The translations under genes and the position numbers were made by a program. The notes beneath the pieces were generated by a model that saw only the letters and a list, made by a program, of their open reading frames with translations, was not told where the DNA came from and did not search any database. Of a stretch of 64,000 bases of DNA, positions 3,719 through 63,363 are shown piece by piece. Each line of letters starts with the position of its first letter. Position 1 is the stretch's first letter. Location of the stretch: positions 372,001-436,000 of the forward strand of contig JAHDYR010000066.1 of the NCBI GenBank assembly GCA_019828565.1, given 5' to 3'. The stretch comes from Carpediemonas membranifera BICM (lineage: Eukaryota > Protista > Fornicata).

Positions 3719-6444
3719 GGATGCTGTAACACTAGTTTCATCGAATATGCTTGACAGCAGCAGTCTCTCTTACATTCGCAGGCTCTTCCAGCATGTAGGA
3801 TCGCTAACTTGCTCTGAATTCGTCCTTCTGATGTTTAGCGTCATCAGACGGCCAAAGAAAGGGCATGATCTCACCATCAACCGCCTCATTGCGACCTTTG
3901 AGGTGATTGACCGGCACTTTGAGGGCACCATCGACTGGGCCGACTTCTCGTCCTTCCTGATACACCCGTCCAGGGCCATGAACGAGCGCGATAGGACCCC
4001 AGTCATGTTCGACGACCCCACCGATACACCCATGCAGCATTTGAATGGCATGGAGATGGCGGTGCTCCACCAAGACCGCCTGCTGCTGTGCGGCCCGGAC
4101 GAGCCCGTCACAGCGTTCCACCCGCGGACACACCTGCTGAAGAAGCTGCCTAAGCGCCACACAGCCGCTGTGCTGTACATGATATCGATCCCACCACCCA
4201 TCGACCGGCTACTGACCTTTGCCGCGGACAACACGGTCTGCATCTGGGAGGGAACGTCGCTCCAGTTCCTGGCGTACGGCTACACCGACGCCACGGTCTC
4301 CTCGGCCGCATACACGCCCGCGATGGGCCCGTACGACCACCAGTTGTACGTCGGCCTGGCTGACGGCCGCCTGGCGATCTACACCCTCACTGCCCCCCTC
4401 ATGCAGTGGCCCAAGCCTAGGCTGTCGCGGCCCCACTCCGACATTGTCTCGGCCATCCTGCCCGTGCCCGAGGTCGGCCTGATCTTCACCGCGTCCTTCG
4501 ACACGACCATCGTCGGCACAGACCCTGTCAAGCTTGACTCCAGACTCCAAGGCAAGGGTCACGTCAGGGCTGTTGCGGACCTCAAGTTCAACAGTGTGCA
4601 GCGTGTCCTTGTCAGCTGCGGCATGGATAGGTCCGTGCATGTGTGGAACGCCCTCAGTCTGCTCAGGGTTGCTACTCTCACCTCGGATTTCAACGTGGCC
4701 GCCATATTCAGCGTCCCCGAGTCGCCCATCGTCGTTGGGGTCGACTACGGCTGCGGTATCCGCATGTGGGACCTCCAGTCGGGCGGTTTGGTGCAGTCCC
4801 AGCAGTCTCTGAGCCTGGGCTTCTCCTGGGCCGTCCTGGACCATCCCAGGGCCCTCATCGTGGGGGCCGGGCCGACTGTTATCGAGTACACCTATACAGC
4901 CACGACCACCGTCGACCAGGCGGCCTCCACCATCGTCTCCGCCGTGCACCTCACCGAGGACGGGTCCCGTCTGTTCGTAGGCCATGGTGAGTCCGTCTCC
5001 ATGTGGGACAGCGGCGTCATGGGCGGCGAGTTCATGGTACCCGGCATAGTCACCGCCCTTGTCGGCACCGTGCATTCTAGGACGTTGTTCGTCGCGACAG
5101 AGCGCGCTGTGTCTGAATACTCCATCCCCCAGGCCTCCCTGACGCCGTGGTTGGCCGTCAAGGGCACCCAGAAGATGTTCTGGGTTGAATCGACCAAGGC
5201 GGTGTGGGTCTGCTCGGCGCACACGTCCAGCCTGTACCCCGTCGGAAAGAAGTCCGCTCTTGTCACTGTCTGGTATGTGTCCCGCCGGCCATGGTGCGGC
5301 CGACTGCCCGTGTCCTGTCGCGTAACCCCGGCGCATACTCCCTTTACACAGCTCCACCGGCCCCTCGGCCTTTGTTGAGGTCAGCGATACCCTTTTCGTA
5401 TCCACAGATTCCACGGTCGAGGCCGTCTCAGCGCTCGGCCGTCGAGTGGGCTCCGTTGTCATGCCCGGCCCGGTCACCGCGATGGTGGGGTCGCCCGACT
5501 CCGACGTCATCTACATCCTCAGCGGGCTCGTCGTCTACGCCCTGCACGCCAGCTGTCTGCTGCCCCTGACCGTCAGGCCGCTGTCTCGCGTGCCTGCATC
5601 CCCGATTATGGTCACGATGGACCCGCACCTTTTCATCCTCGGCGAGGGCGGTGTCTTGAGGATGCCGCTCGAGAGCGACTACGACCGGGCCGACGACTGG
5701 TCGAAGAGGGCTACGGGGTCAAGCATCCTACAGCCACCAGTCGTCGAGTCTGAGGTGCCCGGGGCAATGCTTGTGACCCGCAGAGTAGGTCCGGCACCGG
5801 AGCTAGGCGGACTGGCCCCTGACCTCCATGTTCACAGAGCTATCGCGGAGGCCGTCGACGTCGGAGCCGATCCGATCACTTGCGTCCACTCTGTGAGCGG
5901 TGTGGCTGTCTTTGGCACGTTTGGCGGCTCTGTGCGTTACCTCCAGCGGGAGACGTATCTGTCCCGACTCTCTCCAACCAGTTGCCCCAAGCCGGAGCCG
6001 ACCAAGCGGTGGGCCAAGCGGTCGTACAAGACACTGGGCAGCATCCATAAGGACATGAAGACGCTGGCGCCCCAAGTCACCGACAGGGTCAAACCTGTCC
6101 TAAAACTGCTCGATGATACGATCAAGCGGCACTACGTCCGGGACCCGATCCCCTTCACCCTCTGGGCGGATAGAACCATGGACGAGACGACGCGGCAGAA
6201 GCGGCAGCAGGTGTTTGCTGAGGCCCACCGTGGTCTGGGGATTGAACCAGTTACTGCGAGGTCAGCGCGAGGAGGAACGTCTCTCGCACGCATCCACCTG
6301 CCCGAGACGAAGCTGGCTGATAAGCAGGCGCACACCTCGTCGAGCAAGGCCGTCCGGGACATCCTGACGAGGTCCCAGAAGTACCAGCATAAGGTACACG
6401 CCAACGTGGTGTCGCGGACAGCCGACTATATTCGGCACCGGTAG
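3719..6444 (+). CDS. EF-hand + WD40 repeat protein (WDR49/EFCAB8-like); intron 5273-5351
   Basis: EF-hand-like IDRHFEGTIDWADF and several WD repeats. The 79-nt intron GTATGT...TTTACACAG joins the 3651 and 5446 ORFs in frame. Confidence 0.7.
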
Positions 6445-6518
6445 GCCACTTGGTGTGTGTAGGTACAGGAAATATACATGCAGCAGCGCATATTAATACA
6501 TGAACATAAATCAAGTGT

Positions 6519-8182
6519 TTACTCCTTGAGGGAGCCGCGCTCGCGCATCATGGGCATGACGCGGTTCTCAAGACGCATGTTGGTCTCGATGGGGAGGCCG
6601 GCGACGCAGCGGAGGATGTTCTCGAGGCAGGCACGCTGGGCGGGGAGGGCGTTGATGATGGGGGTCTGGTCGGGGACGCGGGGGGCCTTGCAGAAGAAGG
6701 AGATGGTGTTCATGACGGGGTGGAAGTTCTCCCACTCGCCGTTGGGCTCGCGGACCTCGAGACGGCCGAGCATCTCGCCGCAGAGGGCCATGTCCATGAT
6801 GATGGGGGCCGCCAGGAGGGAGTCCTCGCACGTGTTGTGGAGGACGATGGTGTTCTTGCCGCGCATGAAGATCTCGGAGGTGTACTCGTCCATGGCGCGC
6901 TTGGAGTCGCCGACGTACTTGAGGTACTTGATGACGATGCAGTGGTCGGGCTTCTCGATCTCGCCGGGGCGCTTGTAAAGGATGTCGTTGGAGGCAACGA
7001 TGTCGTCAACGACGTTGGCCTTGGTGATCTCCTTGCTGCGGAACTGGGCGGGGGAGGAGAGGTTGAGGCCGTCGTTGTTGCCCAGATGGTTGTAGGAGGC
7101 GATGCAGGTGGGCTTGATGCCCGAGGAGACGAGGAAGTCGGTGAGGACAGACTTCATCTTGGTCTGGCCAGACTTGAAGTCGTCGCCGCCGATCATGGAG
7201 CGGTTGCGGACGGCGTACTCGATGACGCCGGGGACGAGGGTGTTCTGGGGGGAGCCGTTGATGAAGGTGACCTTCTCCTCGATGGCAGCGATGGCGAAGA
7301 GGCTGGAGGGGGCGATGTGCTTGCTCTTCTCGGCGTCCTTGAGGGAGGCGAGGAGCTCGGCCTCGGTGGTGTTGACGCCCTCGATGATGGGGGCGAAGCA
7401 CTCGGTGTTGGCGGTCCAGAGGACGACGATCTTCTCGAGGTTGTTCTCCTCCTTGAACTTGCGCATCTGGGCCTTGATGACCTCGACGTACCAGCGGCGG
7501 CCGGTGGTGTCGACCTCCTCGCCGAGCATCTCCTTGGCGTACTCAGCGGTGATGACGTTGTTGGCGCGGTCCTCCTGGTTGGCGGCGACGAAGTTGATGT
7601 CGAAGACGGAGGGCATGGGGGTGATGTTCTCCATGTAGGGGCGGAGCTTGTGCTGCAGGGTCACGTCGAGGACGGCGGCCTTCTGCATAGCGGCGTACAT
7701 GTTGTCGTTGTTGATGTCCCAGCCACCGAGCATGAACTGGTCGGGGTTCTTGGGGTCAACGAAGGGGACGAGGCTGCGGAAGGGAGCATAGACGTCCTCG
7801 CCGGCGTGGGTGGTGCCGAGACGGACAGTGGAGCTCTCTATCATGGAGCCGAAGAAGTTGGGGTTGCAGACGCCGTCCTTGCGCTCCCAGGTGATGTTGT
7901 GCTGGTTGGCAAGAAGGCCACCGAGAAGAGTGGAGCCGTTGGAGCCACCGAAGCCGACAAGCATGAGGCCGGTCTTGGGGGCGTGCTGGCTGATGCGGAT
8001 CTCAAGCTCCTTGTGGGTAGGAGTGACAACGGCGTGGCCGTCCTTCATCTCAACCTCGGTGTTGTTGTAGACGAACCTAGAGTAAGAAAAATGGGAGCCT
8101 GAAAGCGGCAAACAACATACTTAGAGGTCTTGTAATCAGTAGTATCAGCCTTACCGGCAACGGAGAAAGTATCCACGAGCAT
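6519..8182 (-). CDS. INO1: myo-inositol-1-phosphate synthase; intron 8077-8120
   Basis: GFGGSNGS, LWTANTE, NGSPQNT, GDDFKSGQTK and SYNHLGNNDG motifs. A 44-nt intron (GTATGT...CTTACTCTAG) gives the N-terminus MLVDTFSVAGKADTTDYKTSKFVYN. Confidence 0.95.
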
Positions 8183-33538: not shown

Positions 33539-33792
33539 TTTGTTTTTATGTAATCTAGGACGTGTCAGCGTGATACGTCAGTAAACGGTGTCCAAACGCC
33601 TCGTCAGTAGTTGTGTATCACATAAATGGCTCATGTTTATAAATCACTGCCCCCAAAATCGCCATGATGCCCTCATGTCCGCTACTCTCCTGGTGTATGA
33701 CAAGTGGAGCGTCAAGCTGGGACTGTTCAGCCCCCTGGAGCTTCTGCCAGTCGATCTGCCGGCCTGAGCCAGCTGTTTACGTTGAGTACGTA

Positions 33793-33867
33793 AGCCCGAT
33801 TGTACAGACGAGGGCTGAAGTGGGTGAGTGGAGGTAGTGTGCCGCGCAGGATTAGAATTGTTGAGTC
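33793..33867 (-). mobile_element. solo left-end fragment of the Fanzor transposon
   Basis: 33792-33869 is identical to 48519-48596 and to the reverse complement of the start of the copy at 63362; TA lies on both sides (33791-33792, 33868-33869). Confidence 0.9.
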
Positions 33868-33925
33868 TATGCGAGTCGTAGACAATAAACCATAAACTGC
33901 ACCAACGACGAGGTGAATATCAGCC

Positions 33926-45919: not shown

Positions 45920-46170
45920 ATACACCGGCGTTGGATGCCGACGGACAATTTTAAAAATTTTGCACATTTGATTTCCTTCTGAGGCAGAATATCATGAACC
46001 CACAAGGATTAATACCGCCACTGGATGCAAAGCTGGAGCTCTGTCCCGGGGTGTTCACTCGGGCCAAGCAGTGATGGCTATGAAGAAGATTGGCAACCAA
46101 CTCAAAAGATAGGGGAGGGGAGTGACAGGGCAGAATATAACACATTGATTGACGCTGGTGTACAACCTTA

Positions 46171-46210
46171 TAATGTGCCGCGCAGGATAAGAATACTTGA
46201 GTCCAAAACA
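46171..46210 (+). repeat. imperfect direct repeat of the transposon left end (pairs with 48562-48601)
   Basis: taatgtgccgcgcaggataagaatacttgagtccaaaaca vs tagtgtgccgcgcaggattagaattgttgagtctaaaaca, 35/40 identical, ungapped. Confidence 0.9.
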
Positions 46211-46317
46211 CACAGTGATCCAAGCAGCATCAGGATCGCAGTGTGGTTCATCATACTCTATCAATCGTGCGCTGCATATCACGCGCGCTGCAGCGCGTGC
46301 TTGCTCAACTTAGCAAG
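46171..46317 (-). ncRNA. putative Fanzor omegaRNA (scaffold; guide boundary uncertain)
   Basis: Three stem-loops directly after the stop codon: CTTGCT/AGCAAG (46300-46317), CACGCGC/GCGCGTG (46280-46299), CACAC-GATCC/GGATC-GTGTG (46209-46245). Position matches known TnpB/Fanzor omegaRNAs. Confidence 0.6.
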
Positions 46318-48211
46318 TTAATGATAGCGAGGAAGAGCACCTCTCTGGGAGTCGTAGTGGAAAGGAGATTGCTCTATCTGATCTGAAGTTGCATCGTAGG
46401 TGCACCAAAGGATGTTCTCGCTGGCGCTCTTATCTCGGTGAGAGAGATTGAGAAGTATGTCTCTCTGCTCGGGATGCCGACGTCGCCGTTCAACGCGCCA
46501 TGGAGCTCCCTCGCACGCGGGATTCTGGCAGAGCATGGTGCGGCGTGTGTGCATCACACGTCTGAAGTGTGCTTTGCAGTATGGGCACACGATGGAAGTG
46601 CGGAATTCCGAGACCATCGTGACACTCACGACGACGTTGTGCCGGAGCATGATGCCAGGAAGAGCTCGAGCAAAGTGGCGGTACGGAGCACAGGAGGGAG
46701 TGCCGGCGGAACCAAACAGTGCAGCCCCATACGCGACTTCGAGTTGAATGGGCTCCGGGGGCGCCCGCCGAGATCATCCAGGAGTTTACGTCCAGCCCGG
46801 GCGAAGTGCTTCTGGCGCAGACAGTGATTGGCAAAAGTCGCACGGCGGAAACACTTTCTCGTCCCCTCGTTAATGATCTGAACGATGTTCTCATGGACAA
46901 ACCTAATCGACTGTTTGAGAGCCTCTAGACTTGTCGTTTTGAACGATGCTGCGCTCATATTCACGCGGAAAGAGGGGGTGGCAGTGTAGCCACACTTAGC
47001 GAGTACGCCAGATACACTCTGCCCGTCTGGGCGGCGGATCGTGTAGCCGCCCAGCGACCGAGCACCAGGGTCGAAGCCCATGAGAGCTTGAATGTCCGGG
47101 GCAGGAGTAGCCTCGGCGTCATCCTGACCGAGCCGAGCCCGCTTGTTGCTGCTACCCTTTTTGTACGTGGGCCGGTCAGCCACCCGACCGCCACGGTATT
47201 TCTCGCGACCCACCCAACCCGTCACAGCAACAGAGACCCCGTCTGTCTTCACAGAGAGCACTCTGCGGAGCTTGGTGATGTCGCCGTGATCACGCTCGTA
47301 TCTATCAACCTGCTCAGTGGTCAAGTTCTTAGTTGCTGACCAATTCACGTGCTCACGCAGGCGCCTCTTCATCGCTGGGGTGAGCACTGTCACTCCGCGA
47401 TCGATGGTCATGAACCCAGGCCTGACCGGTGCCATCGGCACGAACGGGACGAGCTTCGGCTCTGGCAGGGCCTGACTGAACTCGAGGTTCACGGCACGAG
47501 TGAGTGTGACCAGCTTGGTCACTGCAGCACTCATGCGCGTGACGCACGACAGCACGCCGACGAGGGCCTCGGCCACGGTATCAGTGCGACCCACCCGTTG
47601 CTCCTCGGGCAATGCATGCGATGATGATACCTGCCATGATCGGCGGCTATGGCGGCAACCTCAGTGTCGAGCTCGCCTAGGGTGTCGAGAAAATCCTGTA
47701 GAACACCCGGCCGATCATGGAGGAGCAGACGCACCCGTTCTAATCCAGCACGAAGACGGGTCAGGTACGCGTGTGACGCGCGCGAGAGCCAGACCCGGGT
47801 GGATGTGGAGTACTCACCCAACCAGCTCTGAAATGGAAATGCAATTCCAATGTAGGCTTCCCTGAAGTCCTGGACGAGTGGGGTTATGTCAGGGTACCTC
47901 CGCATCGCCAGGTCGCCAATCCACCTGCACCGATCCGCTGCCTTTGCCTTCGACACCTTTTGCTGAGCAATGCTGACGATCTGCTTGAGGACCTCCTCGT
48001 CGAACAGGTTGACCGTCCTCGGTGGGGTCAACGCGTGCGCAGATGCAGAGACGCACGCAAGCAGGCAAGTGAATGTGTACTTAGCCTGCGTGAAAGAACG
48101 CATGCCGGGTTCAAGGTTTCCTCGCCGCGGCGCGTTGTTATCGCCTCCGCCGTTAATCTCGCCAATGGCCTTGTTAACGGAAGCCTTCACCGTGTATATC
48201 TTGGAAGGCAT
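46318..48211 (-). pseudogene. Fanzor (Fanzor1-like) RNA-guided RuvC nuclease, ~631 aa after correcting two -1 frameshifts (real lesions or assembly errors)
   Basis: SVKTDGVSVAV; RuvC-I GFDPGARS (D 47070-47072); SFKTTSL...FRRATF...QK; VAYGAALFG; RuvC-II VSEFRTS (E 46606-46608); Zn finger CPYC/CQNPAC; RuvC-III HRDKSASENI (D 46432-46434). Confidence 0.9.
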
Positions 48212-48362
48212 CGGAGTCTATTGAGCTGCCTGCATCGAGCATTTCTTTTCAGGGTTCATCAGCTGGCAGCATCCCTCAAAACACAAGAAACCGCATCATA
48301 CAACACAAAGCGTCTTTACTACCAGCTACAACCGCTTTCCACCACTAGTGTCTCTCACAACA

Positions 48363-48380
48363 GACGACGACGACGACGAC
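48363..48380 (+). repeat. (GAC)6 microsatellite in the Fanzor element 5' region
   Basis: gacgacgacgacgacgac; a longer, degenerate version lies in copy 2 at ~63575-63601. Confidence 0.8.
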
Positions 48381-48664
48381 GTCATGAGCTTCAGACGCCA
48401 GCAATGGACGACAGATGAGCGCGTAACAGACGAGCACATACGCGAAAGAAGGCAGCAGCGTTCGACACAGACGATGGACGACGCATCTTTTCGTGCAGAC
48501 CGACGACTGAAAGCACGAAAGCCCGATTGTACAGACGAGGGCTGAAGTGGGTGAGTGGAGGTAGTGTGCCGCGCAGGATTAGAATTGTTGAGTCTAAAAC
48601 ATCTCTAAAACCACTTGTAATGAACCTTATTCTGCACATTCATCGATCGGAATTTTGGACTGTT

Positions 48665-50017
48665 ATGCTGAATCCGCAAGAGGAAACCGAAAGACTCCGC
48701 GAGCGTAACATCTACAAGAAGGATATAACTCGGGATGAGCGTTTCCTTGCCACTGCAGCCGAGGAGAAGGCGAAATGGGAACAAACCGAGCAGGAACTGA
48801 AGAATAGAATCGTTTCCGAGAAGGAAGCCGCATACGCCGCCGAATTAGAACGTCTAGAGAAGCAGAAGGCGGAGCGCATGGATAATGCTCGGTTGGATCT
48901 GTCTCGTGAGCAGAAGATTGAAGCCAAGATGGTTGAGAGGAAGGAGAACCAGCAGAAACTCATCAGCGACCTCAAGATGAAGCAGACTATTGAGGAGGAA
49001 GACCGTTCTGGCCGCCTCCAGCGCTCGAAGGAGGAGGCTCTGGAGCAGAGGGACTACCGCATCAAGGAGCAACACGAGACGGCCGTCGAGAACAGGGCCA
49101 TCGAGGAGCGACGCCTGGAGAAGATCAAGGAACGCGATGACCGCCTCAAGCAGCGTGCAGCCGAGTATGTGACCGACATCAAGAAGCAGCGTGCCGACCT
49201 AGACCGTGCTGCCACGGAACGGGAGGCACTGCGCCTTCAGTCCATCAGAGACCGCGAGGCTGCCCGTGACGAGGCCCAGCGCAAGGCCCGGGATGAGCAG
49301 GCCCGCAGAGAGCAGCTCGAGGAGCAGCGGCAGCGGGCCATCGACGAGAAGACCGTCATCCGGACAAAGGCCGAGCTCGAGGCGCACGAGAAGGACATCG
49401 AGGCCAGACGCGTGGCCAAGGAGGAGTTCGAGGCCCGCAAGGAGGCCGAGCTCACCGTTAAGCGGCAGGCACTGGCCGAGTCAGCCAAGAAGCAGCGCGA
49501 GGAGGCCGCCAGACGGCAGGAGCTCGAGGCCAAGCGCGAGGCCATCCAGCAGGCCAAGAGTGAAGAGCGCGCGTCCAAGAACCGCGAGTACGCCTCGAAG
49601 CTGACCGAGACCAAGGCCACCATCGCCGCCAGCGAGGCCGAGCGTCTCCGCATCATTGCTGCCCGCAAGGAAGAGGCGTTCAAGCGGCACCAGGAAGAGG
49701 CGGCCGCCCGTGCGGAGGCCAAGAAGCAGCAGGCAGTGCTGCAGCGGACCCGCGAGGGCGCCATCATCCAGCTGGCCAAGGAGCGCGATGCCACAGAGCG
49801 GGAGCGCATCATCGAGCTCAAGCAGAAGGAGGCCGAGCGTCTTGCGGCGATCGAGGCATCCCGCGAGGAGCGTCGCCAGCGTGCTCAGGCCGAGAAGGAG
49901 GCCGAGATGTCCCGTCTCATGGAGCAGCAGCGCGAGCGCCTCAAGAAGGAGAAGAAGCGCGAGGAGGCCATCGAGGCCAAGATCCAGAAGCGGAAGGGAA
50001 AGTTCGCCAAGAAGTAA
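48665..50017 (+). CDS. E/K/R-rich coiled-coil protein (possible flagellar/cytoskeletal)
   Basis: ~450 aa charged helix starting at MLNPQEE. The ORF-track extension to 48527 is transposon sequence. Confidence 0.75.
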   Translation: MLNPQEETERLRERNIYKKDITRDERFLATAAEEKAKWEQTEQELKNRIVSEKEAAYAAELERLEKQKAERMDNARLDLSREQKIEAKMVERKENQQKLISDLKMKQTIEEEDRSGRLQRSKEEALEQRDYRIKEQHETAVENRAIEERRLEKIKERDDRLKQRAAEYVTDIKKQRADLDRAATEREALRLQSIRDREAARDEAQRKARDEQARREQLEEQRQRAIDEKTVIRTKAELEAHEKDIEARRVAKEEFEARKEAELTVKRQALAESAKKQREEAARRQELEAKREAIQQAKSEERASKNREYASKLTETKATIAASEAERLRIIAARKEEAFKRHQEEAAARAEAKKQQAVLQRTREGAIIQLAKERDATERERIIELKQKEAERLAAIEASREERRQRAQAEKEAEMSRLMEQQRERLKKEKKREEAIEAKIQKRKGKFAKK

Positions 50018-62959: not shown

Positions 62960-63363
62960 TGGGAAGAGGGTCGTTTCTTTTGGTTTAAAGTTTTAGATGC
63001 GGTATTGGTGCCAGTAACGAGTCTAGCAAAGGGTGAGGTGGTCTGGGTCTGCGTACAGGACCAGACCTTCGCCCCGCAGATTATGTCAGAAAACAAGTAG
63101 CGTTTAGAGGGTTTATGTGGAGGATTCATGTAAAGGTGACTTAGGCTGTCGACCCCCCTGGGATGAACTCCAGAGGACTGAACAGGTTCAGTCTGACGGC
63201 CCACCTGTCGTACACCAGAAGGGTAGCGGACATGAGGGCGTCGGCGATGGTAAGAGCGACGGTTCTGGGTGGGATCTTGGTTCTCGCTCCAGCAGAAACT
63301 AGGAATGCGGCAGCTTTGGACGCGCACATTGGGATGTTGGAGCCATCCGGCCGCGGAAATTTA

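Follow-up and report, generated by a model that had tools for sequence, protein, structure and literature searches.

The window analyzed here comprises 64,000 nucleotides of the genome of the metamonad Carpediemonas membranifera. On its minus strand it carries a complete copy of a 2442-bp element with TG...CA-type termini, belonging to a family termed A (positions 46174–48615). Its boundaries follow from the target-site duplications tested on 34 genomic insertions, and replace the ends at 46171 and 48596 that were proposed in a previous reading made from the sequence only. The element contains a Fanzor1-like ORF (46318–48211, minus strand), whose reading frame is disrupted by frameshifts near positions 47619 and 46761. 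The motifs that the sequence-only reading had described in three minus-strand frames were all found, in the order given there, between the ATG at 48211 and the stop at 46318 (1894 nt). TDGVSV is located at 47235–47246 and is followed by the RuvC triad (46432–47072, minus strand), with the RuvC-I D codon at 47070–47072, the RuvC-II E codon at 46606–46608 and the RuvC-III D codon at 46432–46434. A C-x2-C/C-x4-C zinc finger is located between the latter two.

Family A was found in at least 21 full-length copies in the C. membranifera genome, 93–98% identical, together with many deleted copies; these counts are lower bounds. Two sister families, B and C, are 44–53% identical to A and retain the D-E-D triad. 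The left-end sequence was found again in the window, as noticed previously, at 33785–33869 and from 63360 onward. The latter belongs to a sister copy, L002 (63096–64000, plus strand), which runs off the window and has a body 0.9% divergent from that of the window copy. It has its own 5-bp duplication at 63091–63095 (4/5 match) and a target motif at 63074–63085. The former is part of an aberrant insertion (33666–33869, minus strand) in reversed order, where a repeat termed R and 51 nt of the element are followed by 3'-terminal sequence from a second LINE subfamily; its target motif lies at 33891–33902. The genome search suggested by the sequence-only reading gave a copy number and an intact ORF, but no autonomous partner, and the description of the family as Fanzor1-like, multi-copy, recently mobile and non-autonomous in a metamonad host was supported.

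The natural copy L010 on contig C18 has an uninterrupted ORF of 634 aa from an MPSK start and was used as reference for ORF comparison. Relative to L010, the window copy was found to have lost 4 nt near 47619 and 1 nt near 46761. The earlier proposal that adding two bases would give one ORF is thus correct modulo 3 only, and does not describe the actual breaks. Both frameshifts are shared with L002, and one each is also present in L020 and L008. They are therefore inherited mutations, and assembly errors were ruled out as their source. Loss of the ORF nonetheless did not prevent duplication of such a copy to a new site, and since frameshifted copies are re-copied, the Fanzor protein is unnecessary in cis for copying. 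Within family A, pN/pS was 0.49–0.76, which suggests mild purifying selection on the ORF. Internal deletions with filler sequence were frequent among the copies; spliced introns were rejected as their source because the GT-AG pattern was absent.

The protein encoded by family A

In L010 the triad corresponds to D384/E539/D597. D384 and E539 are invariant in 21 copies, and D597 is kept in 19 of them. E539 is located 152 residues after DPG and six residues ahead of the first zinc-finger cysteine (C546). A catalytic E placed six residues before the zinc finger and 120–160 residues after DPG is a mark of Fanzor nucleases (PMC13565253; PMC10711439). The last D lies 26 residues past the zinc finger in L010, compared to 4–8 in the prokaryotic pro-Fanzor pattern.

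The profile and structure searches proposed with the sequence-only reading placed Fanzor1/TnpB-like models nearest to the protein, but with E values of 0.08–1.2 (profile) and ≥ 0.014 (Foldseek). In the profile searches the TDGV strand, DPG and the finger were collinear with GtFz1 and PpFz1. The AlphaFold models were poor (pLDDT 41 and 34); the five top Foldseek matches of the poor full-length model were SpuFz/PpFz, for the C-terminal model the best match was Cas12f, at a non-significant level, and a wide structure search (VIA) with the poor AlphaFold model returned helical bundles only. In the ESM Atlas the protein matched clusters from large DNA viruses (NCLDV) with a feature score of 0.98 and a TM of 0.59–0.64 over ~500 residues, and these viral clusters carry a Cas12f1-like TNB domain.

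No significant sequence relatives outside Carpediemonas were found in 1.8 and 5.8 billion proteins, and none outside the species in protein databases, metagenome or viral contigs. All named protein matches were from C. membranifera; the annotation of one reads cytosine deaminase. The protein resembles Fanzor1 (SpuFz1 8GKH/9CEU, PpFz1 9CF0, GtFz1 9CER) and the NCLDV TnpB-like clusters in its length of ~630 aa. With these it also shares the TDGV strand, the DPG of RuvC-I, the E six residues before C-x2-C, the C-x4-C second pair and a structured 3' non-coding region that reaches the element end. Unlike both groups, it has significant sequence matches only within Carpediemonas. The Carpediemonas protein is in all likelihood a Fanzor, and from this family membership we infer that it cleaves in an RNA-guided manner. 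Because the lineage is without detectable sequence relatives, the intact copy L010 is a candidate nuclease whose TAM would be unusual and possibly relaxed.

Element ends and target motif

The window copy is flanked by TTATA beyond the Fanzor 3' end (46169–46173) and TTACA beyond the Fanzor 5' end (48616–48620, both minus strand), a target-site duplication matching at 4/5 positions. An exact 5-bp duplication was found in 21 of the 34 insertions (chance 0.8%), and four more were off by one base (chance 9%). Perfect duplications were also found around solo units that consist of the terminus, a LINE piece and one R, and around L029 and L049 despite their missing inner repeat and purine tract. Two junctions devoid of inner repeat and purine tract were found at two loci each (L053/L055 and L051/L056).

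At the termini, the inverted repeat is a 4-bp match at most. Direct repeats are present instead: the 34-nt repeat R has an inner copy at the Fanzor 5' side (48565–48598) and a terminal copy at the Fanzor 3' end (46174–46207, both minus strand). A degenerate pattern for R had 158 matches across the genome, compared to 0 in the control. The TA noted previously before the left end is part of R and no target site. A TA target site or a TA-ending TAM was therefore rejected, the duplication being a variable 5-mer and not the TA of Mariner-like Fanzor1 carriers. Outermost at the Fanzor 5' end is a short terminal module (48609–48615, minus strand), which is AGTGGTT in the window copy, TGTGGTA in the family consensus and TGTAGCG in a variant. 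At L055 the module is found outside the target; TGTGG is missing from that target and was thereby ruled out as target sequence. A purine-rich tract (48544–48564, plus strand) immediately precedes the TG of the inner repeat. Family B has such a tract at the corresponding place, in both families on the Fanzor-antisense strand, and its location before a 3' repeat makes it a putative polypurine tract.

The sequence-only reading had implied a TA-inserting DNA transposon. This was not supported: the near absence of an inverted repeat, the missing TA site and the direct repeats, as well as the variable 5-bp duplications, the purine tract and the LINE-derived pieces, indicate a carrier of retroelement type. 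Nearest to that picture, and to the known Fanzor1 carriers, would be a cut-and-paste transposon moved by a trans-acting Ginger/IS481-type DDE transposase, with chimeras and deletions resulting from gap repair. Ginger/IS481-type transposases have TGT...ACA ends, and 5-bp duplications also fit them. The frequent internal deletions with filler and the purine-tract-less variants at two loci could be explained in this way, and homing is more easily explained if an element excises (PMC13565253). We nevertheless consider cut-and-paste highly improbable. The inverted repeat is just 4 bp, and the model does not explain how both direct repeats change in concert, why R is restored at the terminus past foreign sequence, why two families have the purine tract, and why many LINE junctions are fixed on one side.

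A promoter-like host motif with the consensus GTGCAGTTTATG (PWM from 33 sites) is located 10 nt from the element terminus (48626–48637, minus strand). The distance from GTGCAGTTTATG to the terminus was 10 nt in 24 of the 33 sites and 9–11 nt in 31 of them. The motif followed by N10 and TGT had 63 matches genome-wide, compared to 1 in the control; the matches were mostly to this element family, and some were to other TGT-starting sequences. The flanks had previously been called unrelated, but most of them hold a variable piece of one LINE together with the common target motif. The motif is also present inside R, in the family B repeat and in one resident gypsy LTR. In the inner R of the window copy the variant is on the plus strand (PWM 9–12 bits).

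Host genes are often close to these sites. Of 58 host ORF starts, which include those of genes flanking insertions, 16 have the motif on one or the other strand within the preceding 70 nt, compared to ~3% per strand at random. In 17 of 36 insertions the start of a long host ORF lies 5–35 nt past the far end, compared to 6% at random. These positions argue for the motif being a promoter element, with insertion probably taking place near transcription starts. No fixed sequence (TAM) next to the insertion point was common to the empty sites.

LINE-derived pieces and a proposed route of copying

Beyond the inner R, most copies have a LINE piece and then the short terminal module, usually TGTGGTA. 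In the window copy this LINE, termed LINE-A, is represented by a minimal remnant of its 3' tail (48599–48608, minus strand); in other copies the LINE-A sequence at this place can reach about 470 nt. The end of sister copy L002 holds a 255-nt LINE-A 3' piece (63103–63357, minus strand) with 99.6% identity to the longest LINE-A piece. The latter encodes a CCHC knuckle, VHN and D-x-DVT restriction-like endonuclease (RLE) motifs, and Atlas matches to LINE-A include zf-RVT clusters. Judged by its motifs, LINE-A is a non-LTR retrotransposon of the RLE type, of which the pieces represent the 3' end. The LINE-A piece had 36% matches to ORFs of 1391–1505 aa in the genome, no Pfam or PDB match and no visible RT domain. 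The genome search revealed no full-length LINE-A, and an RT-family search for a LINE-A master was dominated by other RTs.

Junctions were compared at 64 loci, picked by similarity to the element or to the LINE piece. All LINE pieces retain the LINE 3' end and are 5'-truncated, the shortest being a few bases and the longest ~470 nt in length. At the LINE-to-R junctions the R side is fixed, with 1–3 nt of microhomology or 1–5 untemplated bases and sometimes stuttered restarts. The piece length varies even between closest relatives, being 8 and 255 nt in the two window copies and about 30 and 136 nt in L005 and L015. A few LINE junctions occur at more than one locus, so that LINE pieces can also be inherited. 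Chimeras were found among A, B, C and LINE sequences, and four-gamete incompatibility was 52–72%, which together indicate frequent template switching or conversion.

The LINE pieces could have been acquired after integration. In that case a mini-LTR element would be inserted by an integrase, and LINE-A, as a sequence-specific RLE retrotransposon, would later insert in a Tx1-like manner where R meets the terminal module. The junctions have a fixed upstream side, variable 5' truncation, a 3' tail with stutter and missing target DNA on the upstream side, all typical of target-primed reverse transcription (TPRT) as in R2, and a TCTAAA hexamer flanks the piece and resembles a duplication. Such insertions would need a near-complete occupancy, as there are only 3 exact uninterrupted, LINE-free ends genome-wide. 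Moreover, the terminal module can directly adjoin mid-R or unrelated sequence, some LINE pieces continue into ends of family B (L048, L053, and L055), and a full-length LINE-A was not seen. We therefore find later insertion unlikely.

A further alternative is pure TPRT by the RLE LINE protein, with the element as a SINE-like passenger recruited by template jumping and the duplication resulting from staggered RLE nicks. This is in agreement with the LINE 3' end adjoining the target-side terminus in most copies, with the jump-type junctions and with the chimeras. In light of the tested duplications it appears very unlikely, because the two termini are of the TG...CA type and the duplication is constantly 5 bp, truncation of the far end is very rare, and neither the purine tract nor the concordance of the ends is accounted for. 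In addition, other TGT-starting sequences have the same spacing to the motif, and the longest LINE-A piece has neither terminal module nor motif.

Concordance of the ends was observed in the distal part of R, where the two ends have the same diagnostic base in 20 of 23 elements (p = 0.0006); between copies adjacent on the tree this base changes at both. At L059, ~660 nt of foreign DNA are followed by a partial R and then by the correct duplication. In L024 and L016 the terminal R that follows foreign inserts is a variant of the element's own inner R. A terminal R rebuilt in this manner is the outcome expected of strand transfer to a copied inner repeat. The ends differ in their last 7–12 nt and in the proximal part of R, and one of them holds the LINE piece. 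The route is therefore not the standard LTR route, and unlike in a normal LTR element the two ends are never identical. L051, a single case without inner repeat, ends 10 nt from the position of the motif in the terminal repeat. The point where L051 stops coincides with the predicted start of an antisense RNA. In contigs from two sequencing runs, element depth (summed over copies) was far above that of the flanks and flank depth was uneven; the latter suggests an RNA origin of these runs, the type of which was guessed.

RT elements are abundant in the genome, among them a gypsy family with 81-bp LTRs. This family had 0 matches at the motif spacing and was rejected as an inserter at the same site. 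No helper was found, the gypsy elements tested being one family. Two resident gypsy LTRs resemble R only in the promoter motif and in 4–6 terminal bases, and no TGG-type primer-binding site was seen by eye on either strand.

The explanation that we consider moderately probable is a non-autonomous retroelement with lopsided LTR-like ends and Fanzor1 as antisense cargo, copied by jumps of a reverse transcriptase acting in trans and inserted at promoters by a gypsy-type integrase. An RNA antisense to the Fanzor gene would start inside the terminal repeat and end just past the inner repeat. The trans-acting reverse transcriptase would begin the first strand with the 2–7 nt terminal module, and then usually jump to the 3' end of LINE-A RNA, copying a variable length of it, and from there to the 3' end of the element RNA; for both jumps the anatomy of the junctions is directly observed, while the enzyme is presumed. 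Second strand synthesis, primed at the purine tract, would copy the inner repeat, a chemistry suggested by the observed concordance of the ends, and strand transfer onto this copy would presumably rebuild the repeat at the far end. Finally, a gypsy-type integrase tethered near the promoter motif may insert the product 10 nt away with a 5-bp duplication; here the footprint is seen in the insertions and the enzyme is suggested by it.

Summing this reading with the two LINE-based alternatives above, the carrier is very probably RNA-based in some form. More tentatively, each copy may be stitched together by template jumps across three element RNAs, namely those of a helper terminus, an RLE-LINE and the Fanzor unit, and be inserted by a gypsy integrase at host transcription starts. 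If this hybrid route is true, each new copy gains a host gene 5' end as a new Fanzor guide, and the result would be a retrotransposon-borne OMEGA system that homes without a fixed TAM or acts on host promoters.

Comparison with known carriers and candidate guide RNA

With non-autonomous LTR retrotransposons of the TRIM/LARD type and promoter-targeting Ty3/gypsy elements such as Tf1 and Ty3, the Carpediemonas element has in common the TG...CA ends, a 5-bp duplication, a purine tract, short direct repeats, solo repeats and an unvarying distance to a promoter motif. It differs from all of them by having repeats of 34–41 nt that are never identical, no visible primer-binding site, a variable LINE piece at one end and an antisense RNA-guided nuclease as cargo. 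The TG...CA termini and a 4–6 bp duplication (21/34 exact) are those of an LTR retroelement, but the LTRs are not identical and only their distal part is concordant. To R2/CRE/NeSL, Tx1 and U6/L1 chimeras the likeness is in the CCHC knuckle and restriction-like endonuclease motifs of LINE-A, and also in the 5' truncation, microhomology and untemplated junction bases. Unlike these, LINE-A is found almost only as short pieces in the element end, with no full-length copy, and whole units carry an integrase-type footprint. Short terminal direct repeats are also present in Replitrons and Cryptons, and Fanzor1 occurs in Cryptons. Unlike in these, HUH and tyrosine recombinase genes are absent from the loci read, and neither the LINE pieces nor the constant 5-bp duplication match them. 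Compared to Fanzor1 in general, the Carpediemonas carrier is not a known DNA transposon and its empty site is without a constant TAM.

The element is thus a divergent Fanzor1-like gene on a carrier undescribed in the literature, which works like a non-autonomous LTR element and fails the test of identical LTRs. A literature search found no published mention of this family. Carpediemonas was not mentioned in the texts and supplements of Fanzor papers searched, the supplements of Jiang 2023 aside, and transposon terms were absent from the text of the Carpediemonas genome paper. According to a 2026 review, no retroelement-type carrier is known for Fanzor nucleases. If our reading is true, three Fanzor families on a carrier with a retroelement footprint would contradict the review on this point, and the question of what Fanzor is for would become testable without excision. 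The mixed LTR/LINE anatomy of the carrier is unusual in itself.

The region between the Fanzor stop and the element end (46174–46320, minus strand) is a candidate omega-RNA scaffold. It is predicted to fold into two hairpins followed by a long stem closed by the terminal repeat (-52.1 kcal/mol, z -2.06). Family B has the same layout with a different sequence. A ribozyme or known RNA family at this 3' region was rejected, as there was no Rfam match. Because the distal repeat base-pairs into the scaffold stem in both families, R is more likely scaffold than guide. The guide would then be the flank beyond the terminal repeat, which often is a host gene 5' end.

R could alternatively be a fixed guide, so that the nuclease cuts the element's own inner repeat or solo repeats, either in self-targeting or to process intermediates. 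R is indeed located after the hairpins of the scaffold, and the opposite end of the element offers it a perfect target. Against this stand the pairing of the distal repeat back into the scaffold stem in both families, and the guides of characterised Fanzors, which lie in the variable flank (PMC13565253). Self-targeting is accordingly regarded as rather improbable. With the flank as guide, the nuclease might cut the empty allele in an RNA-guided manner and spread insertions by homing, the simplest and most likely role, which we find about as probable as not; homing is weakened by the empty site being without a fixed TAM. The placement of insertions at promoters is underlined by the 17 of 36 insertions with a long host ORF near the guide-side end. 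The far end past which these ORFs start is the side that supplies the presumed Fanzor guide.

Target motif and gypsy LTRs

The window element (46174-48615, minus strand) is inserted at the target motif upstream of a coiled-coil host gene (48657-50017, plus strand), the ATG of which is located approximately 20 nt from the motif. This promoter-like motif was also found inside the 81-bp LTRs which, in pairs, bound gypsy elements of 9-10 kb. Such pairs are present in the host genome assembly on contigs C63 (203872 and 212880), C48 (14282 and 24551), and C1 (1382215 and 1391257), and an 81-bp LTR was found on the minus strand of locus L027 (3344-3424). The terminal variant TGTAGC matches the end of the 81-bp LTR over 6 nt. 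Among the gypsy elements carrying these LTRs, none was found at motif spacing.

LINE pieces

The longest LINE-A piece, approximately 870 nt, is located in locus L061 (7021-7886), where it begins directly past the 3' LTR (6938-7008) of a different gypsy element. This LTR also contains the target motif, while the LINE-A piece carries neither the 34-nt direct repeat R nor the terminal module. L061 further contains a 238-aa ORF (5877-6590, plus strand) with SET-domain-like motifs, as judged by eye, immediately followed by a chromodomain fragment and a gypsy LTR.

The LINE-A 3' tail (window 63103-63120) is composed of irregular TAAACCC-like units resembling telomere repeats. Full-length LINE-A masters may be located in unassembled chromosome ends. 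For the second LINE subfamily, the 3' end was found together with the flank present in L027 in a tandem array of approximately 1.67-kb units (C8:147290-157545), and a stretch of this sequence is captured at locus L059.

Rearranged insertion loci

Locus L062 (5000-9650; C8:931006-935637) contains a 2.08-kb triplication in which a gene fragment is repeated together with the target motif, the terminus, and the LINE piece, with the Fanzor body in the last unit only. Loci L007 and L058 have an identical left flank with LINE pieces of unequal length, and the right flank of L007 is common to L009. The flank sharing between L007, L058, L009, and C4:667016 can be read either as ectopic recombination between copies or as repeated hits on duplicated promoters.

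Other Fanzor copies and families

Two further Fanzor families, B and C, were found with 44-53% identity (loci L014, L048, L055, and L022; proteins P0014, P0045, P0048, and P0012), P0012 looking like a C/A chimera. Family B has its own direct repeat and purine tract, and shares the target motif of family A. Protein P0002, a 97%-identical copy of the window Fanzor, is named "cytosine deaminase" in NCBI/UniRef, which looks like a mis-annotation. Sequencing runs X5 and X6, labelled as two other organisms, contain low-depth contigs with at least 95% identity to the element, which are probably due to carry-over from the same species.
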